Below, piece by piece: positions 6,543 to 62,595 of a stretch of DNA of 64,000 bases (position 1 is its first letter; each line of letters opens with the position of its first letter). The position numbers and the translations under genes were made by a program. The notes beneath the pieces were generated by a model that did no database searches, had not been told where the DNA came from, and saw nothing but the letters and a program-made list of their open reading frames with translations. The stretch lies in the IMG/VR virus record IMGVR_UViG_3300020186_000013, positions 62,001 to 126,000 of that record. One strand, 5' to 3'.

Positions 6543-7330
6543 TGCGGGCCTCCAAGTTGAGAAGCAGCATCGCTTGCGGCCTCTGCCTTCTGGGCGATAC
6601 TGCCGACACGTTCTTCCAGCTCCTTCGTAGTCCCCTCACGCAGGGGGAGTGCCTTCAGTTGCTGTACCAGTTCCTGCGTGCCCTGGCGGATGACGGCGTC
6701 GACGTCGTCCGATTTGTCTTGCTGGTTCTGGTAGATCATTGAGAACATTTCCGGGTCGTCACTAAAGTTGAAGCGGACCTGGTTGCTCAGGTCGGCCCCG
6801 ATGGCGATCCGGAGAATGTCCGGAGGGGTAACGTACCCCTCTTCCTTCAGAAGGTGCGAGATGTAGTGCCGGATGTCGCCGCAGAACGGTTCATCCTCGT
6901 CTGGCGGCGACAGTAACAGGGCCTCGGTCAGAGCCCACGCGGTCTCAGCCGAGTCGGGGTGCGAGACCTCGTCCGGTTGGAACTCCTCGCCCGACAGGAC
7001 GGTGGCGAGGACCAAGAAGCGAGACAAGTCCTTAAAGAACAGGTCCGTCGTCACGATCGTGATCGCCGCCATCAGTTTGTCGAAGGTCAGCTTGATTGGC
7101 TCGACGCCGGTGTCCCGCCGGATCTCGTGCATGATGGTTTCGGGTGCCCAGACGAACACATTGGGCTGCTTCGTCTCAGGGTCGAACCCGAAGTGGTCGA
7201 TGGCCCACACCAGCACGGTGGTAGCGTACGTGCCCTCGCCACGCAGCATGTCGCGGACGGCCTTGGTCGGGCCGTGCCCGAAGTCAGTCACCGTTGCTGT
7301 TGCGGACGTCCTTATGAGACTTGTCGGCAT
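6539..7330 (-). CDS. Hypothetical protein (possibly virion/late)
   Basis: 263 aa; the start codon sits in a GGC-ACGGAT-GCC hairpin like those at structural genes. Confidence 0.75.
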   Translation of the reverse strand: MPTSLIRTSATATVTDFGHGPTKAVRDMLRGEGTYATTVLVWAIDHFGFDPETKQPNVFVWAPETIMHEIRRDTGVEPIKLTFDKLMAAITIVTTDLFFKDLSRFLVLATVLSGEEFQPDEVSHPDSAETAWALTEALLLSPPDEDEPFCGDIRHYISHLLKEEGYVTPPDILRIAIGADLSNQVRFNFSDDPEMFSMIYQNQQDKSDDVDAVIRQGTQELVQQLKALPLREGTTKELEERVGSIAQKAEAASDAASQLGGPQ

Positions 7331-7808
7331 CCGTGCCCCCGTAGATCTGGCGTATCCGGTTCATCGTCTTCAGGTACAACGCGGTCACGTCGCAGTTGAC
7401 GTGGGTGATACAGGCGTCGGGAAGCTCCGGGATCTCCTCGTCGATTTGCAGGTCCAGCCAGAACTCGTTGGCTGTCGTCGACACATACCGCATGTCGGAG
7501 ATAGTCAGTACGAACGACGGTAGTTCTTCCCTCGCGTCGCCGTCGTCCAGGCCGATGCCGAGGAACGCCTGGTACTCGGCCAGGTCGCGACTGCGGCGGG
7601 TCAGAATGAGCTGCTGCTGCTGGTCGCTGATGAACCCGATGTAGTGCATCCAGTCGGCCAGCATCAGCTTTAGCTGCACGAGGAGCGGGACGTTCTTGGC
7701 CTGGTGGGGCTGCACCTTCAGGTAGCCCCGTACCAGGTAGGCGAACCGCTCCGGTTCGAGCATCACCAGGACCCGCTTCAACTGCTCAACGGTCACCGGC
7801 GTCATCAC
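7284..7808 (-). CDS. Hypothetical protein
   Basis: 174 aa, coupled to the stop of the upstream gene. Confidence 0.7.
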   Translation of the reverse strand: MMTPVTVEQLKRVLVMLEPERFAYLVRGYLKVQPHQAKNVPLLVQLKLMLADWMHYIGFISDQQQQLILTRRSRDLAEYQAFLGIGLDDGDAREELPSFVLTISDMRYVSTTANEFWLDLQIDEEIPELPDACITHVNCDVTALYLKTMNRIRQIYGGTDADKSHKDVRNSNGD

Positions 7809-8173
7809 AGGAGCGGCCTCGTCAGCGGGACGTCGATGCGGTACGCCGCCGGCCGCATCTTGGGGTGCGTGAGGGGCAGCACCTCGTCCTTGTCGCCGCG
7901 TACCGCCTCCAGAGGCTTGCCCTCGACGTTGACCGGGTACGCCGGGCCGACGTTCCCGTTGATGCGGGGGCTGCCCATGCCCTTCTGGGCGGCAAACCCG
8001 GCAGCGAGCGTGCGGGTCTGGGTCGACCCCAGCTCCTCGATAGCCAGGCCGAAGTTGGCAGTGTTGTCACTCTCGACAACGACGACGCCGCGACTGAAGT
8101 CTTCCTCGAACTTACTCTCTTCCGAGACGACCTTCAACATGATGCGATCTTCCGATTGGTAAAGAAAAGGCAT
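7805..8173 (-). CDS. Hypothetical protein
   Basis: 122 aa; the start is preceded by a GGTACAC/GTGTACC hairpin. Confidence 0.7.
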   Translation of the reverse strand: MPFLYQSEDRIMLKVVSEESKFEEDFSRGVVVVESDNTANFGLAIEELGSTQTRTLAAGFAAQKGMGSPRINGNVGPAYPVNVEGKPLEAVRGDKDEVLPLTHPKMRPAAYRIDVPLTRPLL

Positions 8174-8207
8174 GGGTACACGGCTGAAGTGTACCTCATG
8201 CCGACCC

Positions 8208-8286
8208 CGGTGGCCAGGCTAACGGGCTGCACATGAATCTCCCTTAAGCGGGAGAACTGCATGTGCAGGCCGCAGCCTGGTCACCG
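8208..8286. other. Long imperfect hairpin (~79 nt), candidate structured RNA or processing site
   Basis: Nested stems cggtggccaggct/agcctggtcaccg, ctgcacatg/catgtgcag and tctccc/gggaga. Confidence 0.6.
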
Positions 8287-8408
8287 TATGGCCGTCCGAA
8301 GAGCGAACCAGGCACGCCGCCCGGTCGCGAGTTGTTGCAACTGCCGCCAGTTGGCAGCCTCACGTCGTTCCTCCAGTTCCTGAGCGGCGGCTGTCACCTC
8401 GTCGTCGC

Positions 8409-8843
8409 TCAGGCCGGGCAGTTTGGGACCAACGCCCTCACCGCCTCCTTCGCCGCCAACTCCGACTCCGTCATGTTCAAACCCGTCTGACGGTAGAGTG
8501 TTGCCAGACTCGCCTCCAACGCCGTCGTCTTCCTCCGTAGAGCCGGCAGAAGGACGATCGTCATCGGGCTCTTCTGTCCGAGCTGGGTGTTCAGCTCGGT
8601 CAACCTTTCGGCGACTTCGCTTAATGCTGCTTCTGTCACGCTTGCTTGTACCATCTCGAACTCTGACAGGATCGACGTCCGTACCGTCGCCAGCAGACTC
8701 CGCAGACGCCCGGCCATCTCCTCCCGTGTCCTCGTCATCACGAGGAGCGGGTCGTCGCTTTCGTCCCTGGTCACGACGGGGACCAAGGCATCGGTCGAGC
8801 TGGGCTCGAACGACTCCGAGGTCGCTTCCTTCTTCTTCGCCAT
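8409..8843 (-). CDS. Helical hypothetical protein; possible -1 frameshift extension to 8281
   Basis: 144 aa, SD GGAGGAG; slippery C CCA AAC at 8427-8421. Confidence 0.7.
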   Translation of the reverse strand: MAKKKEATSESFEPSSTDALVPVVTRDESDDPLLVMTRTREEMAGRLRSLLATVRTSILSEFEMVQASVTEAALSEVAERLTELNTQLGQKSPMTIVLLPALRRKTTALEASLATLYRQTGLNMTESELAAKEAVRALVPNCPA

Positions 8844-8912
8844 TCATGACTCCTCCGAGTAGGGACGAGGACCGAGTGGTCCTCGTCGGGTATGTGGAAA
8901 TGGAAACTGTGA

Positions 8913-9518
8913 TCACTCGTCGTCGGCATCATCATCCAGATGACGGGCATACTCGACTTCCTCGGTCGCCCATCTCTCTTCCTCTTCCTTGTGGTAGAGT
9001 CGCGACGCGACGTTGTCGCCGAGTAGCTTATCCAAACTCAACCACGTCACCCAGAACACCATTCCGAGCGACCCGGCTACCGGGTACTCGACGGTGACCA
9101 CGCCCAACAAGAACAGCACACACGCGAGTACGGTGCTCTTATAAACTCGGCGTCGGTTGGCCTTGCTCTTGAACTCGACCGACAAAGCCGCCAAGTACGG
9201 CACCTCCAACACCAGCACGATGCCAGTTACAGCTGCCAAGCCGAACTGCCACGGGAACGCATACCCGGTGATCACCAGACACGTCACCACGAACACTGCG
9301 GTGGCGACGTACTGCCAGTACGTCGTCTTTACCTGCGGGGCCAGCGGGTCGATCTTCAGACCGAAGGCTGACGACACCGCGTTGTAGAGCATGGTCGCCG
9401 TCGTTACGGCCATGTACCACAACCCTCCGAAGATCGAGCCGATGAGGCTGGTCGGCTTCGCCTCGTCGTCCTTGACTTCGGTCTTGGTCTTCTTCTTGGA
9501 CGTTGTTGCCGTTGCCAT
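8913..9518 (-). CDS. Multi-pass membrane protein
   Basis: 201 aa with 4-5 hydrophobic segments; SD AGGAG; follows the promoter-like motif. Confidence 0.8.
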   Translation of the reverse strand: MATATTSKKKTKTEVKDDEAKPTSLIGSIFGGLWYMAVTTATMLYNAVSSAFGLKIDPLAPQVKTTYWQYVATAVFVVTCLVITGYAFPWQFGLAAVTGIVLVLEVPYLAALSVEFKSKANRRRVYKSTVLACVLFLLGVVTVEYPVAGSLGMVFWVTWLSLDKLLGDNVASRLYHKEEEERWATEEVEYARHLDDDADDE

Positions 9519-9550
9519 GTGAGACTCCTGAAGAGGGTAAACGAGAAGAG

Positions 9551-9595
9551 GTAAGATACCTCTCAGATAATATGACGCAGATCAGTGTTTAATTT
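9551..9595 (-). promoter_or_regulatory. Promoter-like element, copy 1
   Basis: Minus strand AAATTAAACACTGATCTGCGTCATATTATCTGAGAGGTATCTTAC, closely similar to the copy at 56439-56483. Confidence 0.6.
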
Positions 9596-9641
9596 AGTAG
9601 ACGTGCTCGGGACGTGTCCGGCGTGTCCGGCCATCGAACTT

Positions 9642-9672
9642 AACGAAAAGACCTCCGGGATCACCGGAGGTC
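9642..9672 (-). terminator. Intrinsic terminator ending the structural/glycosyltransferase operon
   Basis: GACCTCCGG-TGATC-CCGGAGGTC followed by TTTTCGTT. Confidence 0.75.
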
Positions 9673-9679
9673 GTGTGGC

Positions 9680-9695
9680 TAGATTCCAGTTTCTA
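9680..9695 (-). repeat. Dispersed 16-bp quasi-palindrome, copy 2 (TAGAAACTGGAATCTA)
   Basis: Begins with the TAG stop codon of 9693..10016. Confidence 0.85.
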
Positions 9696-10016: not shown

Positions 10017-10039
10017 CGCTATCTCCTTGCAGCTTGATG

Positions 10040-10489
10040 CTACGGGGCCGGTTCACTTAGAGATCCCTGCGGATCTTCAGGGTACGGGCCGATCCAGACT
10101 TCCTCAACCGGCTCCAAATCTTCGAGGCGGTTCAAGGCGTGCACCAAAGTGGTAGCTTCCTCGACGATCAACCTCCATGCCTCATCAGCCAAGGCGGTCG
10201 ACCGGAAATCGAGTTCGACGAACCGCTTCCGGAAGAACGGGTACGCCTTCTGAGGGTCCGGCTCCTCGGACGGGTATTCGGCCATGTCAACCGGGCTGGC
10301 GATCGTGAAGAACGTGTCGAGCACGTCGCCGGTGTACGGGTTAGCCAGGTCCCGGCGGTACACGAAGATCTGGGGCTCGATCCCGTGGGTCAACTCGACC
10401 TCGACCCGCAGCCGAAAGGCACTGAGGTACAGGTAGTCGACGTTGAGGACGGCCAACTTCTTGAGTTTGATCGCACGCTCGACGGGCAT
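10040..10489 (-). CDS. Hypothetical protein (probable virion-associated)
   Basis: 149 aa, SD AGGAGG, lies in the late operon. Confidence 0.75.
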   Translation of the reverse strand: MPVERAIKLKKLAVLNVDYLYLSAFRLRVEVELTHGIEPQIFVYRRDLANPYTGDVLDTFFTIASPVDMAEYPSEEPDPQKAYPFFRKRFVELDFRSTALADEAWRLIVEEATTLVHALNRLEDLEPVEEVWIGPYPEDPQGSLSEPAP

Positions 10490-10498
10490 CCGTGCCTC

Positions 10499-10849
10499 CT
10501 ACATCGTCAGGGTCTGCACACGTCCTGTGTCATCCCTATAGTACAGCAAGATCGGAACCGGGCGGTAGCGACGTTTGGCCGTGATGAACGCCACCAAGCC
10601 CGCCCGCGTGGCCTCGGACGCCGCCGCAACGGCCCCGAGCTTCCACAGGAGTTCGTTCAGTTCGCCCTTACCCTCGCCGCAGCTGCCGCAGCCTGTGCCA
10701 CGCAGGGAGCCGTCCAGAGCCCGCTCGTAGACGCCGGCTCCCTCCACAGCCCACGACTCGATTCCAGGGACCTTGTAGAAGTCCGGGAACTTGAGGGCCT
10801 GGAGCAGGGTCAGACGGTCGAAGACGAAGGTCGTACGCGGCCGTCCCAC
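10499..10849 (-). CDS. Small CxxC protein, paralogue of 9693..10016
   Basis: GCGSCGEG motif; C-terminal LLYYRDDTGRVQTLTM. Confidence 0.7.
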   Translation of the reverse strand: MGRPRTTFVFDRLTLLQALKFPDFYKVPGIESWAVEGAGVYERALDGSLRGTGCGSCGEGKGELNELLWKLGAVAAASEATRAGLVAFITAKRRYRPVPILLYYRDDTGRVQTLTM

Positions 10850-14317: not shown

Positions 14318-14320
14318 GGT

Positions 14321-16173: not shown

Positions 16174-18446
16174 CAGATGGTCCCCACGGTGCCCTTGAGT
16201 GCGAGTGCTCCGCTGCCCGTGCACGGGCAGCCCGGCGGGAACGTAATGTCCAGCTCGAACTTCCAGCGACAGCACTCAACAACGGAGACCTTAAACGTCG
16301 CCGCCGGTACGGGACCGGTCCTGGTCGTCACAACGGAGTCGAAGATCCAGTTACACGGCCCCGGCAGGAACAGGTTCAGTTCGAGATCGAACTTGCAGTC
16401 GTCGTTGCAGATGATTTGGAAGTTGCCCTGCGGCCGGGAGCACGGCCCGGTGACGAGGATGTAGAGCTTAGGCGTAATGTCCGGGCACGGGAAGTCGACG
16501 TTCAAGTCGAGTTCAAACTCATTCTGGACGTACCCGACGGCCCACTGAACACGAGGCTTCAGGTTGCACTCGTACCGCCACGTCGGGTTCCGGAGGATGA
16601 TGTCCGGGATCGGAAAGGCGACCCGCAGCTTGAACGTGAACTCGCAGTCCGTGATCTCGACGTTCCAGCTGACCAGACCGAACCCGCCCGGCGGTTGTAG
16701 GAACCACAGCGGGTAGTTGAGGATGATCGACGGGCACGGAAAGTTGACGTTGAGGAAGAAGTCGAAGATGCAGCCCGGACTGCTGGTGATCGTGAACACC
16801 ACGCTCGGGAACTGCCCGGCGGGAAGCCACCGGACCAGCGGCGGTAGCGTGCGTAATCGAGGGCACGGGAAGTCGATCCGCAGGAAGAAGTCGAACGAGC
16901 AGTTCGCGTTGTTCGTGATGATGAACTGGACGAACGGGGGAAACCCGGACGGCAGGTAGTTGACGACCGGCGGCGGTCCACCGACGAACGGGCACGGGAA
17001 CCCGATCGTCAAGTCGACACGGAACAGCCAGACCGCCGGGTTCGTGACCGTCAGGATGACGATCGGGCCGAAGCCGGGTGGTCGCTGGAACACAATGGGG
17101 ATGCCAGCGACGACGACGGGGCTCGGGAACTGGACCGTGTACGTGAAGTTCCAGGTGCAGTTCGCAGCCGGGGCGATGTTGACGAGGAACAGGCCGGGAC
17201 CGCCGGGGGCCTGACGGCTGACGGCCACACCGGCGAGTTGCAGGGTCGGACACGGGAAGTCGACATCGACCGATACATCGAACGTGCAGTCGTCACGGCC
17301 GTCGATGGTGAGCAGGACGCGAGGGATTCCCCCCGGCGGCAGCACTCGGACCGTGGACGGCAGAACGACGAACGTCGGGCACGGGAATGCGATGTCGACG
17401 TTGAATTCCCACGTACAGTCGGGCAGCGGGATGATGTTCAGGACGAACACCGGCTGCGACCCCGGACCGAGGTATCGCGTGAGTACGGTGCCGGTCCGTA
17501 GCAGCGGACACGGGAACCCGATGTCGATCGTGAAGCCCCACGTACAGTCCGCCGTCGGGACGATCAGGAACGCCAGTGTGGGCGGCGAACCGGGTGGCAG
17601 GTAACCAACTGTCGTTGAGTTGACCTGCAACAGGGGGCAGGGGAAGTCGATCTCGAAATCGAAGTCAAACGAGCAATCGCTGTTCGACGTGAGGGTTAAT
17701 GTGAAGTCCGGCGGCAAGCCGGGGGCCAGGTAGTTGACTTTGCCGTCGCCCTGGCCCGATAGGACCGTGGGACCGGGCCTGCCGTTGAGTAGGATGAGCG
17801 GGCAGGGGAAGTCGATCTCCAGGTCGAAGTCGAACGAACAGTCCGCTCCGACGGTCAGCGTCAAGCGGAACTCAGGCTTGGACCCAGGCCCCTTCTGGAT
17901 CGCCTTGCCGGCCCCGCAGGTGACCGAGCCGCCGTTGGAGGGGCACTGACCGCAGATGCAGATCTGAGGACACGGGAAGTCGATCTCAAAGTCAAAGTCG
18001 AACGAGCAATCGGGGCCAACAGTGAGGATGAAGCGGAAGTTTGGCGTCTGGCCCGGAGGCAGCTGGACCGCCTGTCCCTCGGCGAGACCGTCGAGGACCA
18101 TGGAGCCGCCGGTGCACGGCGGTGCCTGGCCCTTCAATAGCAGGGTCGGGCACGGGAAGTCGATGTCGAGGTTAAAGTCGAAGTTACAGCAATCCAGTGG
18201 GACGATTTGGAACGTGAAGCTGCCGGTCGGTTGGCAGGTCGACACGGTCTTAGTTGCGACGATGTTTGTGGCCGGGATGCCGGGGCACGGCGGCGGCTCG
18301 GGCACCGGCGTCGGGATTTCGGCCGGGCAGTCAGGGATGTCCGGAGGAGGTGCGGGTACACTCGGGTCCGTGAGCATGTGCTCGTTCGGGACCGGGTGAA
18401 TCGGCTCGATTACGCACTTGTGCGTATTGAAGACCGGGTCTGCCAT
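16173..18446 (-). CDS. Cys/Pro-rich repeat protein (probable fibre/spike), ~15 repeats of ~43-55 aa ending C-x-F-D-F-x3-I-D-F-P-C-P
   Basis: Repeats are directly visible in the translation; last gene of the fibre cluster. Confidence 0.75.
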   Translation of the reverse strand: MADPVFNTHKCVIEPIHPVPNEHMLTDPSVPAPPPDIPDCPAEIPTPVPEPPPCPGIPATNIVATKTVSTCQPTGSFTFQIVPLDCCNFDFNLDIDFPCPTLLLKGQAPPCTGGSMVLDGLAEGQAVQLPPGQTPNFRFILTVGPDCSFDFDFEIDFPCPQICICGQCPSNGGSVTCGAGKAIQKGPGSKPEFRLTLTVGADCSFDFDLEIDFPCPLILLNGRPGPTVLSGQGDGKVNYLAPGLPPDFTLTLTSNSDCSFDFDFEIDFPCPLLQVNSTTVGYLPPGSPPTLAFLIVPTADCTWGFTIDIGFPCPLLRTGTVLTRYLGPGSQPVFVLNIIPLPDCTWEFNVDIAFPCPTFVVLPSTVRVLPPGGIPRVLLTIDGRDDCTFDVSVDVDFPCPTLQLAGVAVSRQAPGGPGLFLVNIAPAANCTWNFTYTVQFPSPVVVAGIPIVFQRPPGFGPIVILTVTNPAVWLFRVDLTIGFPCPFVGGPPPVVNYLPSGFPPFVQFIITNNANCSFDFFLRIDFPCPRLRTLPPLVRWLPAGQFPSVVFTITSSPGCIFDFFLNVNFPCPSIILNYPLWFLQPPGGFGLVSWNVEITDCEFTFKLRVAFPIPDIILRNPTWRYECNLKPRVQWAVGYVQNEFELDLNVDFPCPDITPKLYILVTGPCSRPQGNFQIICNDDCKFDLELNLFLPGPCNWIFDSVVTTRTGPVPAATFKVSVVECCRWKFELDITFPPGCPCTGSGALALKGTVGTI

Positions 18447-18473
18447 CCTTGACTCTTTGTTGTCGTCCTGCCA

Positions 18474-24956: not shown

Positions 24957-25913
24957 TCAACAGGTGATACAGGAACGGTCGCCCAGGCGACTGCCCAGGA
25001 CGATGGAATCGAACGTGCTGATTGCGGTGTCCAGGCGGTTCACGAATTCACCGACGCTCAGGGCCTCGGCCTGCAACCGTTCGAGGTCTCGGGTGATGGT
25101 CTCCAGCTCCGGGCATCCGCAGCACGGCTGGGAGCACGTGTCGACGAGCTGGATGCCGTTGGCGATCGGCCTCACTTCCAGGCAGCTGTTGCCGATGATC
25201 GTGAAGTCCCCGGCTGCCGTCGGACCGATGCCGTCGATCGACTTGATGGGCAGCGAGGTCTGATCTTCCCCGGTGCAGACGCACTCGTCAATGGTGCCCT
25301 CGCCGGAGATGGCGTTGATGCGGATCTTGGGGTCTTGGCCGGATACGAAGATGGGCACCAGTTGGATGTTCGTGCCCGCGACTAGCTCGATGTCGCCGTA
25401 TAGCGGGGGTGACAACTGGCCCCGGTTGCTAAGGACGATGGAGCTGACGCCGCGAATGATCGGGCGAATGGCATCAGGATCGAGACGACCTCCGTCCAGG
25501 TCGAACGTATGGAAGCCGGGGGGTTGGTCGTCGATGGCTTCGAGTCGGCCGATGACGATCTTGCCGACCGTGTCGTCGAATGGGGCGACGCCGCCAAGGG
25601 CGTAGACCTTGTTGCGGGTGTGAAGCGGACGGGCGATCAAAGCCGTTGCCACGGGGATCGGGGCCGACAAGTCGACTGGCTGGTAGCCGATCACGACCGA
25701 GTACCCGGTCGCATAGGCACCGATGTGGAGGACGAAGAACTGACCGGGGGCGACGTCAAGGCCGGCGTGGACAGCCAGATCCAGTTCGACGATGAAGTCG
25801 TCGGGAATAGCGAAGTCGCCGGTCGTGGAGACGCCGGTGGCGTCTTCCGCGATCGGGTAGTTTCTCTGGCTGTTGAGGTTCAGCCATTCCAGGTTCCACG
25901 CACCGAGTGGCAT
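24957..25913 (-). CDS. Putative tail fibre/baseplate protein, paralogous family member
   Basis: WLNLNSQRNYP motif; LYGDIELVAGTNI; IKSIDGIGP...GDFTI; DTCSQPCCGC followed by a coiled coil. Confidence 0.65.
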   Translation of the reverse strand: MPLGAWNLEWLNLNSQRNYPIAEDATGVSTTGDFAIPDDFIVELDLAVHAGLDVAPGQFFVLHIGAYATGYSVVIGYQPVDLSAPIPVATALIARPLHTRNKVYALGGVAPFDDTVGKIVIGRLEAIDDQPPGFHTFDLDGGRLDPDAIRPIIRGVSSIVLSNRGQLSPPLYGDIELVAGTNIQLVPIFVSGQDPKIRINAISGEGTIDECVCTGEDQTSLPIKSIDGIGPTAAGDFTIIGNSCLEVRPIANGIQLVDTCSQPCCGCPELETITRDLERLQAEALSVGEFVNRLDTAISTFDSIVLGSRLGDRSCITC

Positions 25914-25931
25914 CCGTGCCTCCTAGTCGAA

Positions 25932-27758
25932 TTACGCTCCGCTGACGGCACCAACCAGCTGCAACAACCCGATCTCACCGTTGTAGCCGTCGGGGGCGTT
26001 TCGGGTGATGCTGAAGAAGACGATGTCACCGGGGGCGATGGCAAACGGCAGTGACTCGGCCTCGTAGCACAGGTTGGCGGTGACCAAGGTCGTCTGGAAG
26101 TTGATCGTGATCGGGAACTCCGTGGCTAAGAGCGGCAAGGGCACCAAGGTAGCCAGAGGCGTCGAGGGTCGCGGCACGCGACGGGCCGTTACGGTCATCT
26201 GCGGTGTCGTGCCGATGTTACGACCGAGCACCCGGAACCGAAGGGACAGCATCGGGTTGGGGACGACCAGGTCGTAGGGCACGTGGATTTTGGCCCGGAG
26301 GCTGGTCTGCTCCGTGGCCCCGAACCCCAGGTACATGAGGTTCTGGTAATACTCCTCGGTCACACTGTCGAGCCTGACCAGCTGTGTATCCAGTTCCAGC
26401 GTGTTCTGGGGCGTCACTGCGACTGTGACGATGTCCTGATAGAGCGTCGCCGACAGGGGATTATTTGGGTCCACTGGTCGCGTAACCGGAGACGATAGCA
26501 CGACATTCGGAGAGCCTTTAAGCAGGCCCTCCACCACACGACCACGCCGGAACTGGTTTCCCGTTAGCTCCTTGAACGCCAGCGACCCGACGGCCGTATC
26601 GTTCTGAATGAGGAAGCTGAAGTCCAACATGAGTTCGAGGTCGCCGGCCGTGGCGGGCAACCCCGTCTGAAGACAGAGTACCTTGATGCGGGGGTCGATC
26701 GACCGCAGGCTGGTGACCGCCGTCGTGTCCGTGGCGAAGTTGATTCGGGTGAACCAAAGGTCCATCCGCATGTCCGGAGTGTACGGGCACTCGCCCAGGC
26801 TCTGCGACGACACGTTCGGGAAGGCCGTGTCGAGGGTCGCCGGCCACGGGCAATCGCCGTTGCAGTCCGTCAACCACCACAGGCCGTTGCGGTCAATGAT
26901 CGCCATGCCGCCGGCCCCGAGTGGTACGCCGCCGCCGAAGGGGAGGGGGGTGCCGCTCAAGATGACGTTGTCGCCCCGGTTCCATTCCAGGTAGGAGTTC
27001 TGAGCCGGCAGGGGAGGCCATGCGGCGTTGAGCTGTTGGTGAGCTTTGATGTTGTACCCGAACACGGCCCCTGGAGGGGCTAGTCCGTTGAAGACCGCGT
27101 GATTGGCGGGCAACCAGCCGACCAGATTCGGATCAGGGTTGGTGATGATGTGCCGCCCACCGGGGGCAGGTGGCATCGTATCGCCAGCCGGCTGGCAGTA
27201 CAGGCCGAAGTGGTAGTGGATGTGCCGGTCGAAGAAGTCGACCAGCGTCGGCGTTACGAACACCATGCCGTTGCCGTCGGACCGGAGTACCGGCACGGCG
27301 ACGGGCGGGCGGTTGACGTTCATCTTGCCCGGCGTGACGCCCGACAGGAAGTACACGCCCGCGACCACCGGGCCGTCGACGGCCAGGGTCAGGTCCAAGG
27401 GGGCGTAGCCGTAGAGCAGGAGGTCGGCGAGGGTGGTGTCGAACTTCTCGTAGATGACGCCCCACACGTTCGTGCTCGGGGACGTCCGGAGGACGCCGCT
27501 GGAGAGGTCCGTCTCCAGGGACGTGACCGCCCGCTCGAACCGCTGAGTCGCCGGGTTGTAGTAGACCGGCATGCCGGGGACGGCACCGGGCTCGACGGTG
27601 ACCTGGCGGGCGAAGATCGTCGACCCGATCGTGGCTGCTTTGATCAGGTCGTACAGGTAGCGTACGTTCTGGTTGAGCTGCACGAGCGGGTCATTAACAC
27701 TGCCCTCGATAACCGGGTCGCCCCGCTTGATGAGTTGCAGCTGGTCCTTGAAGGCCAT
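25932..27758 (-). CDS. Putative baseplate/tail fibre attachment protein
   Basis: Start re-called to MAFKDQL. Has VNDPLVQLNQNVRYLYD (typical fibre N-terminus) and GVYFLSGVTPG. Confidence 0.6.
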   Translation of the reverse strand: MAFKDQLQLIKRGDPVIEGSVNDPLVQLNQNVRYLYDLIKAATIGSTIFARQVTVEPGAVPGMPVYYNPATQRFERAVTSLETDLSSGVLRTSPSTNVWGVIYEKFDTTLADLLLYGYAPLDLTLAVDGPVVAGVYFLSGVTPGKMNVNRPPVAVPVLRSDGNGMVFVTPTLVDFFDRHIHYHFGLYCQPAGDTMPPAPGGRHIITNPDPNLVGWLPANHAVFNGLAPPGAVFGYNIKAHQQLNAAWPPLPAQNSYLEWNRGDNVILSGTPLPFGGGVPLGAGGMAIIDRNGLWWLTDCNGDCPWPATLDTAFPNVSSQSLGECPYTPDMRMDLWFTRINFATDTTAVTSLRSIDPRIKVLCLQTGLPATAGDLELMLDFSFLIQNDTAVGSLAFKELTGNQFRRGRVVEGLLKGSPNVVLSSPVTRPVDPNNPLSATLYQDIVTVAVTPQNTLELDTQLVRLDSVTEEYYQNLMYLGFGATEQTSLRAKIHVPYDLVVPNPMLSLRFRVLGRNIGTTPQMTVTARRVPRPSTPLATLVPLPLLATEFPITINFQTTLVTANLCYEAESLPFAIAPGDIVFFSITRNAPDGYNGEIGLLQLVGAVSGA

Positions 27759-27774
27759 CCTTGACCCCCCTCTT

Positions 27775-28440: not shown

Positions 28441-28452
28441 GGAATCCCTTCC

Positions 28453-31566: not shown

Positions 31567-31618
31567 GTGGACTCCTTCCCATATGTGCGTGCGGACACGC
31601 GGGTTGCATTATCCCTGG

Positions 31619-34383: not shown

Positions 34384-34401
34384 TGCCGTCCTCCTTGACA
34401 G

Positions 34402-49890: not shown

Positions 49891-49893
49891 GGG

Positions 49894-50370: not shown

Positions 50371-50429
50371 GGAAAAAACCTCCGTGTGTGAAGCCGAGCC
50401 TTACCACAGGCTTGGCGGCTGTCCTTATA

Positions 50430-54324: not shown

Positions 54325-55275
54325 TTATGGTTCGGGGAAGTTCGGCCCGTACGACGAGTAGCCCTCGTCGGGCGTGTGGGCTGGGTCAGGGAAGTCGATG
54401 CCGGCGTCGGGCAGTTGCCCGAGGTGGGCCAGCTGGTCGGGTATCTTGATGTCGTAGACCACGGACGAGTACGCGATGGGCCTCATCTCGACGTTGCCGA
54501 TGAGCGGGCACCCCCGGATCTCACTGACGTGGTCGATCTTGTGGATGTAATACCGGTCGTCGGTCCTCTTGTTGACCCAGATGTCGTCCTCACCCATCAG
54601 GTCAGTAAGCAGCATGCGGGCCTGAACGACGATGTCATTGACGGTTGCTCGGGTCTCGCCGTCGATGTGAATGCGACGGCTCTTGGGGCTCAGGTCGGCC
54701 CAGGTACAAGCCATCGGGTAGAAGTACCCACACAGGAAGCCGGTGCCGTAGCAATACTCGCAGTTGGCGTCCGTGACCTCCTGCGTCTGGTAGTCGAGGC
54801 AGTGCGTGCACCGGACACCCGTGACACGACGTTTGAGCAGGTAACCGTCCTGCCCCGCCCCGATGCGGAACCGGAGCTTCTCCTTGCGGATAATCTCGCG
54901 GGCATTCCGCCAGTCGCGACGGTCGAGAGTGCCGATAGCCGCGACCGGCTGCGACACGTAGGTGCCCTTGGAGCTGGTGACCAGGACCCGGTAGTACGTC
55001 CAGTTGGTCTTACCGAAGACTCGCTTCTCGGGGTCGATGGCGTAGAAGGCGTTCTCGATGGGTCCGCCCACGTTGGCCCAGTCGTCGGCGTCCTGATTGG
55101 CGGACTGGCCGACCTGGAGTTGGAAGACGAGTGGGTTGGGGTCCGTGAAGGTGTCGAGCAATTCCCACATGATGCGGGTGCCGCCCCGGATGAGGTAGCT
55201 CACCACGACCCGGTCGAAAACGGGTTCACACTGGTTGGGGCAGAGGCGGCACCGGTGGAAGTGTGAGTTGGCCAT
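54325..55275 (-). CDS. Putative neck/head-closure protein with zinc-finger motifs
   Basis: Start re-called to MANSHF because a terminator lies just upstream. Contains RCTHC...CEYCYGTGF. Confidence 0.55.
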   Translation of the reverse strand: MANSHFHRCRLCPNQCEPVFDRVVVSYLIRGGTRIMWELLDTFTDPNPLVFQLQVGQSANQDADDWANVGGPIENAFYAIDPEKRVFGKTNWTYYRVLVTSSKGTYVSQPVAAIGTLDRRDWRNAREIIRKEKLRFRIGAGQDGYLLKRRVTGVRCTHCLDYQTQEVTDANCEYCYGTGFLCGYFYPMACTWADLSPKSRRIHIDGETRATVNDIVVQARMLLTDLMGEDDIWVNKRTDDRYYIHKIDHVSEIRGCPLIGNVEMRPIAYSSVVYDIKIPDQLAHLGQLPDAGIDFPDPAHTPDEGYSSYGPNFPEP

Positions 55276-55296
55276 CCGTGGCCCCCGCTGATAGGT

Positions 55297-55331
55297 AAAA
55301 AAAGGCGTTCCTTCATGATGAAGGATACGCC
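55297..55331 (-). terminator. Intrinsic terminator
   Basis: GGCGTATCCTTCA-TCA-TGAAGGAACGCC followed by T7. Confidence 0.8.
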
Positions 55332-57399: not shown

Positions 57400-57420
57400 G
57401 TGCTGTCCTCCCTGATGGGT

Positions 57421-57457
57421 AAAAAAAAAAGGCTGTGACCCTTGCGGGTACAGCCTT
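57421..57457 (-). terminator. Strong intrinsic terminator ending the head operon
   Basis: GGCTGTACCC-GCAA-GGGTCACAGCC followed by T10. Confidence 0.88.
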
Positions 57458-57897: not shown

Positions 57898-57954
57898 GTA
57901 CGGTCCTCCTATGACCTGTCCGACGCGGGAGACCCGCGACGGGGTTGTTGGTGG

Positions 57955-58386: not shown

Positions 58387-58407
58387 GGGACACCTCCTTG
58401 ATGGTTC

Positions 58408-58423: not shown

Positions 58424-58450
58424 GCCGCTCTCCGGTGAGGGCCAGTTGGG

Positions 58451-58813: not shown

Positions 58814-58894
58814 GACTGTTCCTCCTTGAACAGGGGTCGGTTTGTGAAGCAAGGCCGGGTCCCATGACCCGGCCGACGCGACCGTCAAGGTCGA

Positions 58895-59833
58895 TTATCG
58901 GTAGTCGATTCGGGCGAGCCCGCTCGTGTGACCGATGGTGCCGCCCATCGTCTCGTACGCGAAGAACTCCAACATGTACGCCTCGCGGCGAATGTACATT
59001 GTGGTGTCCTCAAGAACGTACGACTTTCCGATGAACTTGGGATCAGCGAAGTGGTACATGGTGTTGGTGGCCACCAGACCCTTCTTGATCGTGACCAGCC
59101 ACTTGCACCCCATGAACTCTTGCAGGCTCCAGCCCTGCTTCATGATGTCCTGGGCGAGGTCGCCGCCCATTTCGTTGCGGGTGAACTTCCCGACTTCCTT
59201 GATGGTGATGTTGTTCAGCAACACCATGTGGACTTCGAGGTTCGACGGCGTGTTGGGCATCACCTTCAGTGAGTCCCACAACGTGTCGCGGGTGATGCCA
59301 CCGGCGATCACCTCGTACTGCACCACGCCCGAGGTCGGGACGATGAGGCCCGGTCCGACGAGGGCCGTGTTTACGGCTCGAAGGAACTTGCCGTCTTCTT
59401 CCGCCAGCATGTCCTTGATCGCGTTGTCGCTGAGGACCTGGCGGATGTCCATGATCCACGTCCTCAATTCATCCACGTCCTTCGTGAATCGAGGGGTCGC
59501 GATCCGGTCAAACATCACGCGGTAGCGGGGACCACGGATGTAGAGGTTCTGGGGCAACGTCGCGAACGGAATGCTGATGGCCGCAGGGCTGTCAGGTTCC
59601 TTGTCGACGATCTTCACCGGCTTGTCGGTGTCGACCTGGCGGTCGAGTTCGTCGTTGGTGATCGGGATCGGCGGCATGATCCGCCGGTAGAAGCCGTCTT
59701 CACGCATCTTCGTGCGGGTGAAGTCGTTGACGGCGTCGATCGCCTGCTTTTCGAGGACGGGGTCCCGAGAAGACAGCTTCTCGAAGATCGTCTCGTTGAG
59801 GAGTTTCGCCTCCTCCTGGGTGGACATGGCCAT
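58895..59833 (-). CDS. Major capsid protein (HK97-like fold)
   Basis: 312 aa; REDGFYRRIMPP, ELRTWIMDIRQV, AEEDGKFL, C-terminal FFAYETMGGTIGH..GLARIDY; follows protease, scaffold and decoration genes. Confidence 0.8.
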   Translation of the reverse strand: MAMSTQEEAKLLNETIFEKLSSRDPVLEKQAIDAVNDFTRTKMREDGFYRRIMPPIPITNDELDRQVDTDKPVKIVDKEPDSPAAISIPFATLPQNLYIRGPRYRVMFDRIATPRFTKDVDELRTWIMDIRQVLSDNAIKDMLAEEDGKFLRAVNTALVGPGLIVPTSGVVQYEVIAGGITRDTLWDSLKVMPNTPSNLEVHMVLLNNITIKEVGKFTRNEMGGDLAQDIMKQGWSLQEFMGCKWLVTIKKGLVATNTMYHFADPKFIGKSYVLEDTTMYIRREAYMLEFFAYETMGGTIGHTSGLARIDYR

Positions 59834-59913
59834 CGAATGAGTACCTCCGTGTAACGTCGAGCTGCTAGGGGCAGCCTTATTGGTTGAGGGTTAGAGTCCT
59901 TCCTGTCCCCGGA

Positions 59914-60456
59914 TCACGGGTTGGACGGGATGTAGATCGGCCAGAACGCGATCGCGTCGTAGCCGTATCCGTTATCGACGACGCCGCGAGACACAATACC
60001 GCAGATGGTATCGGTCCAGACGGTGCCCACCTTCAGCTGCCCGGCGTCAATGGCCGGCGAGACCGTCGACGTCAGGTGGTCGTTCGGAGCGTACGTGCCC
60101 GCCACGAACGCGGTCGAGACGAGTTCGTACGCACCAATCGCGACGAGGGCCATGGCCTGGCCGGTCGGATTGATGGGGATGAACACGCCCTTGGTGGTCG
60201 AGGCGTCTGCCGAGTTGTTCATGACGTCCGGGTCGTCCGACCCGTTGAACATGAACAGGGGCATCACCTTGAGGTCGCCGACGCCGAGCAGGTACTGGCC
60301 GGCGGGCGAGAGGTGAACAACAGAACCAGGGAGCACGACGGCGTTGCCCGCGATTACGGTCGGGTCGAACGTCGTGTTGAAGTCAACGGCTGCCGGCTGC
60401 GGCCACCCCTTGAGTGCGTTGAGGGTGTACTGCGTCATCTGCCGTGGGGCACCCAT
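59914..60456 (-). CDS. Capsid decoration/cement protein candidate
   Basis: 180 aa, beta-rich (PGSVV, YAPNDHLT, CGIVS); immediately upstream of the capsid gene. Confidence 0.6.
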   Translation of the reverse strand: MGAPRQMTQYTLNALKGWPQPAAVDFNTTFDPTVIAGNAVVLPGSVVHLSPAGQYLLGVGDLKVMPLFMFNGSDDPDVMNNSADASTTKGVFIPINPTGQAMALVAIGAYELVSTAFVAGTYAPNDHLTSTVSPAIDAGQLKVGTVWTDTICGIVSRGVVDNGYGYDAIAFWPIYIPSNP

Positions 60457-60526
60457 GTGTCAAATCCTCCGTGAAAAATCTAGTGGCCGCGAGGGCCACT
60501 AGGTGGAAATCGTTTCCGAACACTTA

Positions 60527-60973
60527 TCAGCGGTCGGGAGACCCGAGCACGGCCAACATGGCCATATCGGACGCCTTCTTTTGGGACGTCTTGCGACCCA
60601 CGAACGGGTCGTTGAGGCTGTCGTAGTCGGTCGGGACCGAGCCGTTGAGCCCGGCCTGCTTCTCGTCCACGCCCTTGCCCAGGTCGCTGCCCTTCTTGAG
60701 CCGCTCCTTGTGCAGTTCGTCGACGGCGTTCTTGAGCAGTTGCAGGGTCTCCGCGTGGCTGCCCAGCATGGCGGCGGCTGCCGCACGCTGGTCCTCGCGG
60801 ACGGCCCCTGTCTTAATCATCAGGTCGAGCACCGGACCGGTGAGGTCCGACGCCTTCTTCTGCATCGACCGGTGAACCTCAATTTCGTCGCACGCCCGCT
60901 TCATTCCGAAGCTGCCGATTTCGACGAACTTGAGGGTATTGTCGATGAACTGCTGCATGAGTGCAGGGTTCAT
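60527..60973 (-). CDS. Helical head assembly protein candidate
   Basis: 148 aa with KKAS/KQAG motifs. Confidence 0.65.
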   Translation of the reverse strand: MNPALMQQFIDNTLKFVEIGSFGMKRACDEIEVHRSMQKKASDLTGPVLDLMIKTGAVREDQRAAAAAMLGSHAETLQLLKNAVDELHKERLKKGSDLGKGVDEKQAGLNGSVPTDYDSLNDPFVGRKTSQKKASDMAMLAVLGSPDR

Positions 60974-61028
60974 TAGCGAATCTCCTCCATGAGAAAAGGC
61001 GGTAGGTTACTGTCGGTTCAAACGCGGA

Positions 61029-62510
61029 TCAACGGCCGCTGCGACGCGACCGCTGGATGACTTCGGTGATGTAGTCCTTCATGCCGTCGCGGTGGTTACC
61101 CTGCTTGGCAGCTGCCTGCTTGGGCCGGTTCCGACGGTCATGACCCATCTTCGGTTCGCCGCCGCCATCGCCCATGGCGTCGCCGCCAGGAGGTGCGTCG
61201 CCGCCCGGAGGGGGAGCACCGCCGCCCGCATCGGCACCGCCGCCACCGCCACCGCCCTCTTGGGCCATAGCCTGTTGCAGTTCTTCCGGCGTGACGCCGA
61301 GCTGGTCGAGGAGGTCAGCCAGGTGCTGGGCCTCGTCACCGCCGCCTCCCTCGCCACCGCCCGGAGGGGCACCGACGTCGCCGCCACCGCCGCCCGCATC
61401 GGCACCGCCGCCGAGAGCGGCCATCATGCCGCCCGCGTCGCCGCCACCGCCAGGAGGGGGAGCACCGCCACCCATGGGGTCACCGCCGGGAGCACCGCCA
61501 CCACCGCCGGCCATCATGGCCGGGTCGATCGGAGGCATCTCGCCGCCACCGCCCATCGGGTCACCTTCGGCCTGCTTCTGAGCCTGGAAGAAGTTGTCGA
61601 GGAAGTGGGCCACACGAACGGCGTCGTCGTTCGCGGTCTTGATGACGCCGGTGAGGGCCTCGTGGACCATCTGGTCGGCGGCTTGCTTGTCGAAGTTGTT
61701 GGTCGCCAAGCCGGCCAGTTCCCAGCCAGCCTGCATCTGGAGGCTGGCATCGGCGTCGCCGGCCTGCTTCCGTTGCCCGCCGCCGTTGTTGGCCGCGTGC
61801 TGGCGGGCGTCAGCCGCCGTCTTGGAATTGCCGAGTTGCTCGGACATCTGGCTGATCTGGGCACAGATCAGGTTGCCGAGGCCCTGCATGTCCGCCGCGA
61901 TCTTGTGCAGCGGGGTATCTGAGGCGTACTTGTGGCCGTCGAGGGACTCGTTGTCCGTCCGGGCCGGGTGCAAGGAACCGGGGTCCTTCTTGCCTGCCTT
62001 GACACCCTTGGTCTCGATGTCGGGCGTCTGCCCGGTCGGCTGAGGGTTCAGCGGGCTATCGACGTGATCGTCGGCAGCGGAGCCGGCCGTCTGGACGGCA
62101 CCCTCGGCCTTCTTGAGGCGGGCCTTCTTGTCGCGACCCTTCTTCTCGTCCGACTCGTCGGAGTCCGACGACTCGGCCTTGAGGTCCTGCTCGACCTTCT
62201 TCATGAAGGGGTTCTCGGCCTTCTTGGAGAACTGGCCCAGGAACGCCGACGCCGTCTTGGCTTTCGCCTCGGCGGTGCTGTCGACGCTGATGGCACCCTG
62301 CTCTTCCTTGACGTCCTTTTCGTTCTCCTTGGAACGAGCACCAGTCTGTGCGACTTCGGTGCGGTCGTCGACGTTTTTGACGGGGTGCTCGGTCTCACCG
62401 CCGATGGAGCCCGCTTCGGTGTGGGCCTCCTCGGCTGACTTGGTGTGACCGACGCGGCTGAGAAACGATTCGATGGTGGCCATCGAACTCTGTGCGGATT
62501 TGGTTGCCAT
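61029..62510 (-). CDS. Scaffold/internal head protein with Gly/Pro-rich low-complexity regions
   Basis: Start re-called to MATKSA (SD AAGGAG); about 14 K-x-A motifs; GGGAPPPGG repeats. Confidence 0.65.
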   Translation of the reverse strand: MATKSAQSSMATIESFLSRVGHTKSAEEAHTEAGSIGGETEHPVKNVDDRTEVAQTGARSKENEKDVKEEQGAISVDSTAEAKAKTASAFLGQFSKKAENPFMKKVEQDLKAESSDSDESDEKKGRDKKARLKKAEGAVQTAGSAADDHVDSPLNPQPTGQTPDIETKGVKAGKKDPGSLHPARTDNESLDGHKYASDTPLHKIAADMQGLGNLICAQISQMSEQLGNSKTAADARQHAANNGGGQRKQAGDADASLQMQAGWELAGLATNNFDKQAADQMVHEALTGVIKTANDDAVRVAHFLDNFFQAQKQAEGDPMGGGGEMPPIDPAMMAGGGGGAPGGDPMGGGAPPPGGGGDAGGMMAALGGGADAGGGGGDVGAPPGGGEGGGGDEAQHLADLLDQLGVTPEELQQAMAQEGGGGGGGADAGGGAPPPGGDAPPGGDAMGDGGGEPKMGHDRRNRPKQAAAKQGNHRDGMKDYITEVIQRSRRSGR

Positions 62511-62595
62511 AGCTGGCAGCACTCCTTTGCTTCGGTTACCTGTGTTGGTCCGTATCGCCAGTCCCTGAGCGGACCTCAGCCACCGTTAGGAGGCG

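Follow-up and report, generated by a model that had tools for sequence, protein, structure and literature searches.

Do the short GGA-loop hairpins that overlap translation starts in an uncultured jumbo phage form a genuine set of CsrA-type sites, and if so, which CsrA might read them? The window analyzed was a 64,000-nucleotide stretch (positions 62,001 to 126,000) of the 208 kb contig IMGVR_UViG_3300020186_000013. A preliminary description of this window, made from sequence alone, listed 18 such hairpins on mostly virion genes, and proposed that a host or phage CsrA-like protein gates virion translation as a late-gene switch, perhaps released by a sponge RNA. The hairpins were confirmed as a real, non-random feature of translation starts, although not at every listed site. 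The proposed interpretation was supported in part.

Hairpins at translation starts

All 18 listed strings were located at their coordinates on the minus (mRNA) strand. A loose definition (any 5–7 nt loop containing GGA, stem ≥3 bp) was applied first and was only weakly positive: translation initiation regions (TIRs) gave 31/62 against 23.2 expected from chimeras, with rates of 0.43 for GGA inside genes and 0.52 on the antisense strand. The strict literature definition was then applied (A-N-G-G-A-N hexaloop directly on a stem of ≥3 bp, G-U allowed), and 14/32 hexamers in TIRs (44%) were stemmed, compared with 15/258 at other sense-strand sites (5.8%) and 8/145 on the antisense strand (5.5%; Fisher p = 5.6e-8). 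The chimera null gave an expectation of 2.3 (p = 1e-8). Two starts (55275 and 7330) were set as in the preliminary description. Independent JGI gene calls supported five starts (62510, 60973, 60456, 59833 and 58813) and were split on 7330.

Thirteen of the 18 sites met the strict definition (7326, 10485, 25909, 55270, 27753, 18442, 53305, 59842, 58816, 60981, 62519, 34388 and 28441), as did one unlisted site at the g31566 start. Of the others, 60465 and 50378 have only 2-bp stems in this genome, 57902 has a 7-nt loop, and 45371 and 36055 have 5-nt AGGAC loops. About a third of the listed sites were either not conserved or did not fit the motif, and the AGGAC-loop class was not supported. Starts 1720, 2018, 8843 and 9518, described as lacking the hairpin, were confirmed to lack it.

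Two classes were distinguished (Table 1). In class 1 the loop plus the closing G is the Shine-Dalgarno sequence (SD; C-A[C/U]GGAG-G). In class 2 (C-A[A/C]GGAU-G) the loop ends in the AU of the AUG, the G of the AUG is the closing base, and the last two G of the real SD are in the 5' arm.

Table 1. Hairpin elements at translation starts in the window (all on the minus strand; positions are those of the window), with their occurrence in relatives.
Coordinates	Gene	Element	Position and class	Occurrence in relatives and other evidence
59842..59853	g59833 (58895-59833), major capsid gene; 30% identity to the Salmonella phage Arash major capsid protein	UAC-ACGGAG-GUA	SD, class 1	Strong, with covariation. 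53 unique elements: pairs 1-5 62-91% paired with 3-6 pair types each, pair 6 at background; 82.3% paired vs 64.2 shuffled (0/500), 36 cells changed on both sides vs 10.9 expected
60465..60474	g60456 (59914-60456)	UC-ACGGAG-GA	SD, class 1; only 2 bp in this genome	Strong, with covariation. 59 unique elements: pairs 1-5 53-93% paired; stems include AGAC/GUCU, GAUC/GAUC, AAC/GUU, UUC/GAA, GAAU/GUUC, AGCAU/GUGCU and UUGAC/GUCAA
53305..53318	g53299 (50477-53299), virion protein (sheath role putative); C-terminal half matches a protein annotated 'structural protein' in Arash	GUGC-ACGGAG-GCAC	SD, class 1	Strong, with covariation. 35/41 unique orthologues with ≥3 bp; pairs 2, 3 and 5 z = 3.5-4.3; RNAfold -5.1 kcal/mol
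27750..27769	g27758	GGGGGUC-AAGGAU-GGCCUUC	AU of the start codon in the loop, its G in the closing pair, SD just 5' of the stem; class 2	Strong, with covariation. 5' arm covaries with codon 2 (GGUC/GGCC, GGAC/GUCC, GCUC/GAGY, UGCC/GGCA); 70.5% paired vs 55.6 shuffled (0/500); covariation 0.441 vs ≤0.150 when slid
10485..10496	g10489	GGC-ACGGAU-GCC	Start codon, class 2	Moderate or partial. About 8 of 20 unique orthologues, with changed arms and loops (GGCC-AGGGAU-GGCC, GGCC-AAGGAU-GGCC, UCGC-AAGGAU-GCGA)
25909..25920	g25913	GGC-ACGGAU-GCC	Start codon, class 2	Moderate or partial. About 9 of 42 unique orthologues (GGC-AAGGAU-GCC, GGU-AUGGAU-GCC); family-wide statistic weak
62518..62531	g62510	AGCA-AAGGAG-UGCU	SD; A-U closing pair	Moderate or partial. 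15/21 orthologues with ≥3 bp (GGUCA/UGACC, UUGCA/UGCAG); pairs 2-4 z = 2.4-3.2
60981..60994	g60973	UCUC-AUGGAG-GAGA	SD	Moderate or partial. 11/19 orthologues with ≥3 bp; per-pair statistics weak
18442..18453	g18446	GUC-AAGGAU-GGC	Start codon, class 2	Weak. 3-4 of 11 orthologues (GCC-ACGGAU-GGC, GUC-AAGGAU-GGC)
7326..7337	Candidate start 7330; uncertain, inside the 3' end of the upstream ORF	GGC-ACGGAU-GCC	Start codon, class 2	JGI gene calls disagree on the start (263 aa vs 250 aa); orthologous N-termini could not be aligned
58816..58833	g58813	CUGUUC-AAGGAG-GAACAG	SD	No orthologues detected; RNAfold -6.7 kcal/mol
34386..34401	g34383	CUGUC-AAGGAG-GACGG	SD	Only 4 orthologues, one with ACAC-AAGGAG-GUGU
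31568..31581	g31566	UGGG-AAGGAG-UCCA	SD	Too few orthologues
55270..55283	g55275	GGCC-ACGGAU-GGCC	At the start; fits the motif	Not conserved. 1 of 16 unique orthologous starts
28441..28452	g28440	GGA-AGGGAU-UCC	Upstream; fits the loop motif	Not conserved. None of 3 other unique orthologues
50378..50387	g50370	AC-ACGGAG-GU	SD; 2 bp, marginal	Weak. 12/24 orthologues with ≥3 bp; per-pair z only 1.1-1.6

Conservation and covariation in related contigs

Orthologous starts were compared across 40–60 related uncultured jumbo-phage contigs, leaving out 7326, 58816, 34388 and 45371 for want of orthologues. In four families (capsid, g60456, g53299 and g27758) the stems covaried while the loop stayed fixed. 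Internal controls were included: the next outer pair fell to background (pair 6 in class 1; pairs 5–6 in g27758), slid registers fell to 0.17–0.64, and neighboring gene families were flat. Across the clade, the strict motif was stemmed at 253/822, 80/281 and 51/347 starts, compared with about 5.5% elsewhere (p down to 1e-98). G-U pairs occurred and the excess was confined to the sense strand, which argues for RNA rather than DNA structure. RNAalifold predicted no consensus structure. The hairpins are weak on their own (median dG -3 to -4 kcal/mol), and the capsid hairpin of the window did not fold in isolation, which fits a protein-clamped operator.

Chance complementarity around G-rich SD sequences in a 63% GC genome was considered, given the barely significant loose test, the 2–3 bp length of some stems and the absence of conservation at 55270, 57902, 28441 and 36055. 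It is refuted for the conserved sites by the strict-motif enrichment and by covariation that passed shuffle and slide controls, and is very improbable as a general account, but remains the likeliest reading for those four non-conserved sites.

Loop preference was A-[C/U]-GGAG (141 of 304 strict hairpins) and not AAGGAG (14), the commonest SD in the window, and in class 2 the looped GGA is not the SD at all. One shared loop in two different positional contexts points to a loop-reading factor. An alternative is that the structures work without a protein. In this view class 1 hairpins would display the SD in a loop, or stabilize the mRNA, to maximize translation of very highly expressed virion genes, and class 2 hairpins would enforce translational coupling by blocking independent initiation until a ribosome finishing the upstream gene melts them. 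Class 1 does sit on the genes expected to be most expressed (capsid, g53299) with GGAG single-stranded in the loop, and class 2 hairpins lie 3–21 nt after the upstream stop codon at tightly packed junctions. However, this reading does not explain why the loop is fixed as A-N-GGA-N in both classes while the stems drift, why A-[C/U]-GGAG is preferred, or why class 2 keeps a GGA next to the AUG that cannot act as an SD. SD-containing starts in other phages do not form these hairpins, and a csrA gene in the same genome (below) would be a coincidence. It was considered unlikely, although it is the strongest of the alternatives.

A csrA gene on the same contig

No CsrA domain was found among the 63 proteins of the window, in agreement with the preliminary description. 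The same contig, however, encodes a canonical 64-aa CsrA at 154,589-154,783, 28.6 kb beyond the window (Pfam PF02599, 85.6 bits against a cut-off of 27). The protein is 46% identical to E. coli CsrA with no gaps, and its best solved match is RsmE (PDB 2JPP; E = 2.6e-16). M1, L2, L4, R6, E10, A36, P37, V40, V42, R44 and E46 are invariant. At least eight other clade contigs carry csrA (9 contigs in total), and in relatives it sits among hairpin-bearing genes. At the syntenic slot csrA was found in only 7 of 51 relatives, a count that covers this slot alone and does not establish co-occurrence with the hairpins.

As a method control, 110 unrelated csrA-positive viral loci and the Arash/D69 capsid regions were scanned and showed no enrichment. 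The lack of such hairpins near csrA in unrelated csrA-encoding phages counts against the CsrA reading, as does the lack of the hairpin at the capsid gene in cultured distant relatives with CsrA-positive hosts (Salmonella, Vibrio). No sponge RNA was found in about 180 kb of sequence retrieved for this phage (overlaps included), and no FliW domain was seen among the Pfam hits for the genes examined; about 85 kb of the genome lay outside these searches.

Inferred mechanism

The hairpins have exactly the geometry defined as the high-affinity CsrA/RsmE site, an ANGGAX hexaloop directly on a stem (Duss et al., 2014; PMC4005645), and lie on the SD or the start codon. The explanation favored, with moderate confidence, is that a subset of the phage's mRNAs carries an operator hairpin at the translation start, a 4–5 bp stem closed by C-G and topped by A-N-G-G-A-N. 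The subset includes the major capsid gene, the gene just before it (g60456), g53299, g27758, and probably g10489, g25913, g62510 and g60973. A CsrA dimer (the phage's own, possibly also the host's) would clamp the otherwise marginally stable hairpin and cover the SD or start codon, and so would set when, or how much, these mRNAs are translated, with repression as the default expectation. The analysis itself established the elements, their conservation and covariation, their specificity to certain genes and to this clade, and the csrA gene, whereas binding, the direction of the effect, its timing and what relieves the block are inferred from sequence alone. Repression of the most-needed late proteins would require a relief mechanism. 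The proposed late-gene switch rests only on gene order: the hairpin was absent from about 27 early-looking small ORFs, but was present on at least one RNA-polymerase subunit gene and on genes of unknown class.

Class 1 sites have no conserved second GGA, whereas many CsrA targets use two sites. A doubtful alternative is that these sites bind CsrA in order to soak it up, such that very abundant late mRNAs with one high-affinity site each would titrate host (or phage) CsrA and reprogram host translation without being regulated targets themselves. The single sites on presumably abundant transcripts, the absence of a dedicated sponge RNA in the sequence searched, and host-directed roles proposed for phage CsrA (PMC8450108, PMC11879866) are consistent with this. 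However, a site placed exactly on the SD or AUG inevitably affects translation of its own mRNA, and a phage that also encodes extra CsrA would be working against a sponge strategy.

It is also possible, but improbable, that a different factor reads the loop and that CsrA is unrelated to these sites, for example an unidentified phage RNA-binding protein (most proteins of this phage have no recognizable domain) or a GGAG-directed endoribonuclease of the T4 RegB kind, which cleaves GGAG in SD sequences. Against this, loop and stem geometry match the CsrA consensus position by position, a canonical CsrA is encoded, class 2 loops are GGAU and not GGAG, and a nuclease site on capsid mRNA would be counter-productive.

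Comparison with known systems

A phage-run translational circuit of this kind, acting on the phage's own genes, was not described in the papers searched. Phage- and plasmid-encoded CsrA/Rsm homologues have been reported (Sobrero and Valverde, 2020, PMC7366521; Campa et al., 2021, PMC8450108; csrA homologue PTXU04_00028 in Adler et al., 2025, PMC11879866; plasmid RsmQ, PMC9928087), in which a mobile element likewise carries a canonical CsrA-family protein. Those reports propose or show action on host targets (CRISPR-Cas, motility), and none reports conserved cis-sites on the element's own structural genes.

In the RsmE-hcnA and RsmE-RsmZ complexes of Pseudomonas (PDB 2JPP, 2MF0 and related entries; PMC4005645), an A-N-G-G-A-X hexaloop lies directly on a stem and overlaps the ribosome-binding site. 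The class 2 loop ACGGAU with a C-G closing pair is the same loop as that of the hcnA RNA. In the phage, the putative targets are its own capsid and tail mRNAs, class 1 has G rather than U at loop position 6 because it doubles as GGAGG, there is usually a single site, the putative regulator is phage-encoded, and no RsmZ/CsrB-type antagonist was found in the sequence searched.

In the Bacillus subtilis CsrA-FliW-Hag partner switch, CsrA sits on the SD of a massively expressed structural-subunit mRNA, a possible logic for coupling subunit synthesis to assembly, although no evidence of assembly feedback exists here. Small hairpins that include the SD or AUG of a phage gene also serve as protein-bound translational operators in the MS2 coat protein-replicase hairpin and in T4 RegA or gp32 autogenous control. 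The loop sequence and protein family differ from these, and here one loop motif is shared by many genes, forming a putative regulon; class 2 resembles the MS2 layout.

Genome context and gene content

The 64-kb window, positions 62,001-126,000 of the 208,145-bp uncultured jumbo-phage contig IMGVR_UViG_3300020186_000013 (Ga0163153_10000043 in JGI), is 63% GC, and all 63 genes called in it lie on the minus strand. A megablast search against GenBank phages returned no near relative. The capsid protein was 30% identical to the major capsid protein of Salmonella phage Arash and to a protein of three Vibrio phages. Pfam and PHROGs searches returned no match for most structural proteins, and the labels "sheath", "tube" and "tape measure" used in the preliminary description therefore remain putative, although g53299 matched a protein annotated "structural protein" in Arash and g36054 is a baseplate wedge protein. 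Coordinates of features inside and outside the window were collected (L numbers denote fetched viral loci).

Table. Coordinates of genes and sequence features in the window, on the rest of the contig and in related loci.
Feature	Coordinates	Strand	Description
Capsid gene (g59833)	window 58895-59833	minus	major capsid protein
g9518	window 8913-9518	minus	with g8843, occupies the slot that holds csrA in relatives
g8843	window 8409-8843	minus	with g9518, occupies the slot that holds csrA in relatives
csrA	contig 154,589-154,783; L162:10001-10195; L167:3001-3192	opposite to all its neighbours	canonical 64-aa CsrA, 28.6 kb beyond the window
Putative intergenic module	window ~57,400-57,440 and ~55,280-55,310	minus	run of T followed by ACC(C/T)ATCAG just upstream of the g57399 and g55275 starts
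Identical 17-mer TAGGAGGCACGGATGCC	window 10,482-10,498 and 25,906-25,922	minus	at the starts of two non-homologous genes (g10489, g25913)
CACGGAGG	starts 60456, 59833, 53299, 50370	minus (sense)	four occurrences on the sense strand, always at a translation start
Glycosyltransferase cluster	window 10,810-15,235	minus	g12813 (GT9-like), g14317 (GT2), g15235 (GT-D fold)
Open reading frame at the window end	window 62,596-64,000; L147:14439-15947	minus	listed start 63915 (TTG), runs off the window end; 502 aa in the JGI call
Split RNA-polymerase genes	L147:1-5978 and L148:4665-9930 (contig ~134-146 kb)		Rpb1_2, Rpb1_5, Rpb2_6
Small sigma70_r4 and GerE-like proteins	L144:12242-12655, L160:1-226		sigma-like
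69-aa open reading frame	L163:11774-11983 and L165:11774-11983		weak hit to ribosome modulation factor (PF04957), 1.6 kb from csrA
Terminase-like locus	L146:16922-19251 versus L149:6151-9360		477-aa ORF next to a LAGLIDADG endonuclease ORF, versus a single 1069-aa ORF

Hairpins at translation starts

All 18 hairpin strings of the preliminary description were recovered at their positions, and the observation that CsrA-type hairpins lie on translation starts held. Hairpins were first counted under a loose definition (any 5-7 nt loop containing GGA, on a stem of at least 3 bp), which gave a result barely above chance; such structures surrounded 43% of GGA triplets inside genes and 52% on the antisense strand. 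This definition was replaced by the strict one, an A-N-G-G-A-N hexaloop placed directly on a stem of at least 3 bp, following the published geometry of the high-affinity CsrA/RsmE target (PMC4005645). Under the strict definition 14 of 32 ANGGAN hexamers at translation starts were stemmed, compared with 15 of 258 elsewhere on the sense strand and 8 of 145 on the antisense strand (Fisher p = 5.6e-8), and swapping of 5' and 3' flanks between genes predicted 2.3. Thirteen of the 18 sites met the strict definition, two had 2-bp stems and three had 5- or 7-nt loops; one further site, at the g31566 start, had been missed in the preliminary description.

In class 1 hairpins (SD in the loop) the loop started 13-17 nt before the start codon and contained GGAG(G), and in class 2 hairpins (start codon in the loop) it started 4 nt before the AUG. 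Loop position 1 was A in 79-89% of class 1 elements, whereas GGA was fixed by the anchoring for this class. For class 2, which was anchored on the start codon, G was the commonest base at positions -2 and -1 in 22 and 25 of 37 sequences. Many natural CsrA targets have two or more GGA sites within reach of one dimer. No second GGA was conserved beyond control levels in class 1, and in class 2 the GGA of the SD lay about 9 nt upstream of the loop GGA.

Conservation and covariation

Three sets of related viral contigs were fetched, 79 around the capsid gene (61-89% capsid identity), 53 around g27758 and 49 around g12813, and orthologous starts were located by tblastn. The clade has over 100 contigs in IMG/VR, of 150-235 kb. 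Searches for loci with the single proteins g25913 and g12813 found only 1-2 relatives, and alignment queries were used in their place. In the class 1 families of the capsid gene, g60456 and g53299, 80-90% of unique starts carried the hairpin. With sequences anchored on the GGA of the SD and every orthologue included, pairs 1-5 were 62-93% paired in most positions, each with three to six pair types, and pair 6 dropped to 0.29-0.38, which is background. In-register pairing was 0.69-0.75, against 0.17-0.61 when the 3' partner was slid. The stems were diverse (e.g., GGAAC/GUUCC, GCAC/GUGC, GAUC/GAUC, AAC/GUU, UUC/GAA, AGCAU/GUGCU and UUGAC/GUCAA), while the loop stayed A-[C/U>A]-G-G-A-G with a C-G closing pair. 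Explicit pair counting on a MAFFT alignment of 48 capsid leaders gave 82.3% paired against 64.2 +/- 1.9 for shuffles (0/500), with 36 cells changed on both sides against 10.9 expected and a covariation score of 0.329 against at most 0.173 when slid.

In the class 2 family of g27758 the loop A[A/C]GGAU ended in the AU of the AUG, and the G of the AUG paired with a C. The 5' arm covaried with the second codon (GGUC/GGCC, GGAC/GUCC, GCUC/GAGU, GCUC/GAGC and UGCC/GGCA) down to about 31% protein identity. Pairs 1-4 were 65-81% paired and pairs 5-6 were at background; pair counting gave 70.5% against 55.6 for shuffles (0/500), with covariation 0.441 against at most 0.150 when slid. The hairpin was seen in about 8 of 20 unique starts of the g10489 family, with changed arms and loops, in about 9 of 42 of g25913 and in 3-4 of 11 of g18446. 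The families of g57897, g57399, g58386, g55275, g54053, g36054, g30015, g20289, g21935, g19445, g36559 and g37753 were negative, so the sites proposed at 57902, 55270, 28441 and 36055 are most likely chance.

RNAalifold predicted no consensus structure for either alignment; the hairpins are too short and weak for an energy-based consensus, and pairs were therefore counted explicitly. The hairpins are thermodynamically marginal, with a median dG of -3 to -4 kcal/mol against 0.0 in a control family, and the 3-bp capsid hairpin of the window did not fold alone.

Specificity

Across the clade, ANGGAN hexamers at start-like positions were stemmed in 31%, 28% and 15% of cases in the three regions, compared with about 5.5% elsewhere (p from 4e-9 to 4e-98). 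No enrichment was found in 110 unrelated csrA-encoding viral loci (8.9% vs 7.1%), and in Arash and Vibrio phage D69 the count was 0 of 12. The element is therefore not a by-product of SD-containing starts. Among strict hairpins in the capsid-region loci the loops AUGGAG (77) and ACGGAG (64) dominated, whereas AAGGAG, the commonest SD in the window, was rare (14). The excess was on the sense strand only and G-U pairs were used, so the structure is in RNA.

In the window 14 of 63 starts carried the hairpin, from 7 kb to 62 kb. Outside the window it occurred on seven more starts on the structural/RNAP side, including that of an RNAP beta-like subunit gene (GGGCA-ACGGAA-UGCCU), and on none of about 27 starts in the small-ORF block beyond the low end of the window. 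This pattern would fit an absence from early genes, with temporal classes only presumed, and the set is not purely virion genes.

A phage-encoded CsrA

No CsrA domain was found in the window, in agreement with the preliminary description, and a phmmer search with E. coli CsrA of the first 3.15 Mb of loci returned nothing, as the gene lay outside that sequence. The contig was then walked using the Pfam hits of each gene, and a 64-aa PF02599 protein appeared and was confirmed on the window's own contig, next to 2H-SAK, NUDIX/AAA_33 and RNR genes. The protein scored 85.6 bits against the Pfam cut-off of 27 (model positions 1-52 of 53), and four other clade copies scored 56-75 bits. It was 46% identical to E. 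coli CsrA over 57 residues with no gaps, and its best solved relative was RsmE (PDB 2JPP, and the RsmE-RNA complexes of the 2MF series). Proteins of this family have about 60 residues and RNA-binding beta1 (MLxLxR) and beta5 (VxVHREE) segments that include Arg44; these segments were invariant, with M1, L2, L4, R6, V40, V42, R44 and E46 unchanged in alignment A5. The SD of the csrA gene itself sits in UCGA-AAGGAG-UCGA in the window phage, which hints at autoregulation, but the feature is not conserved.

Eight other clade contigs also carried csrA. In seven of them it was seen in a slot of the g12813 region, and for two contigs the slot was mapped between the orthologues of g10016 and g8173, where it lies among genes that carry class 2 hairpins in the window. 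Co-occurrence of csrA with the hairpins across the clade was not established, as a scan with the CsrA alignment was swamped by 356 unrelated viral contigs and a scan for NUDIX neighbours found only the phage itself.

Rfam returned no hit, Csr/Rsm families included, in the window or in 115 kb of further sequence for this phage, and no cluster of three or more strict hairpins per 300 nt was found. No sponge RNA of the CsrB, RsmY or RsmZ type was thus found in about 180 kb of fetched sequence, overlaps included, which left out about 85 kb of the genome (contig 1 to ~41.6 kb and 164.8 to 208 kb). No FliW domain occurred among the listed Pfam hits.

Interpretation

The best-supported reading is that these are operator hairpins for a CsrA-family protein, most simply the phage's own. 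In this view binding would clamp a marginal hairpin over the SD (class 1) or over the SD tail plus the AUG (class 2), and so control initiation. The analysis establishes the elements and the csrA gene; dimer formation, GGA-dependent binding, the direction and timing of any effect on translation, and its relief are inferred. Protein-free display of the SD or translational coupling, late mRNAs acting as a CsrA sponge, another loop-reading factor, and chance were weighed as alternatives, and are made less likely by the fixed loop shared by two positional classes together with a putative cognate csrA gene. The interpretation in the preliminary description, a late-gene switch gated by a host or phage CsrA-like protein and perhaps released by a sponge RNA, was supported only in part.

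A further hypothesis, considered about as likely as not, is a self-contained phage Csr circuit, in which a jumbo-phage clade encodes its own CsrA and has evolved high-affinity CsrA operator hairpins on the ribosome-binding sites of its capsid, tail and some other genes. The phage, not the host, would then set the timing or dosage of virion protein synthesis after transcription, and may couple synthesis to assembly as in the CsrA-FliW-flagellin switch.

Phage-encoded CsrA homologues have been catalogued since 2020 (PMC7366521, PMC8450108) and are assumed to act on the host. A 2025 study states that their role in the phage lifecycle had not been tested, and found a plaque-size defect on knock-down (PMC11879866). 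Literature searches found no report of conserved CsrA-type sites on a phage's own structural genes, and as far as these searches show the circuit would be the first defined regulon, and its hairpin the first cis-element, for a phage-encoded CsrA. The candidate phage-internal targets are 16-20 nt hairpins with natural compensatory variants across more than 100 contigs, and together with the putative cognate 64-aa protein they make the question directly testable in vitro and in E. coli reporters without culture of the phage. If confirmed, CsrA-type control would extend from bacterial physiology to virion gene expression, and would add a post-transcriptional layer to gene regulation in jumbo phages that carry their own RNA polymerases.

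Other features of the genome and its relatives

Relatives of this phage (L150-L157) were binned into MAGs labelled with six unrelated bacterial lineages (Nanopelagicales, Nannocystaceae, Gemmataceae, Phycisphaerae, Zixiibacteriota and Methylococcales), which is likely mis-binning of phage contigs and gives no reliable host signal. The split multisubunit RNA-polymerase genes and the sigma-like proteins mark this as a jumbo phage with its own transcription apparatus. Relatives of g55275 show TTTTT-AGCTATCAGC...GCTATAATCA upstream of the start, and this looks like a conserved terminator-plus-promoter intergenic module. A matrixin-type peptidase, a PG_binding_1 domain and a Sigma70_r3 hit were also detected in the window, none of them mapped to a gene.

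The protein-level alignment of the open reading frame at the window end continued upstream of the listed start, and its N-terminal part matched a protein annotated "structural protein" (gp222) in Arash. The open reading frame with the weak ribosome modulation factor hit was called in only some of the near-identical contigs. The two forms of the terminase-like locus come from near-identical contigs, the single long open reading frame having a faint terminase GpA_ATPase hit, and look like a homing-endonuclease or intein polymorphism in a terminase-like gene.
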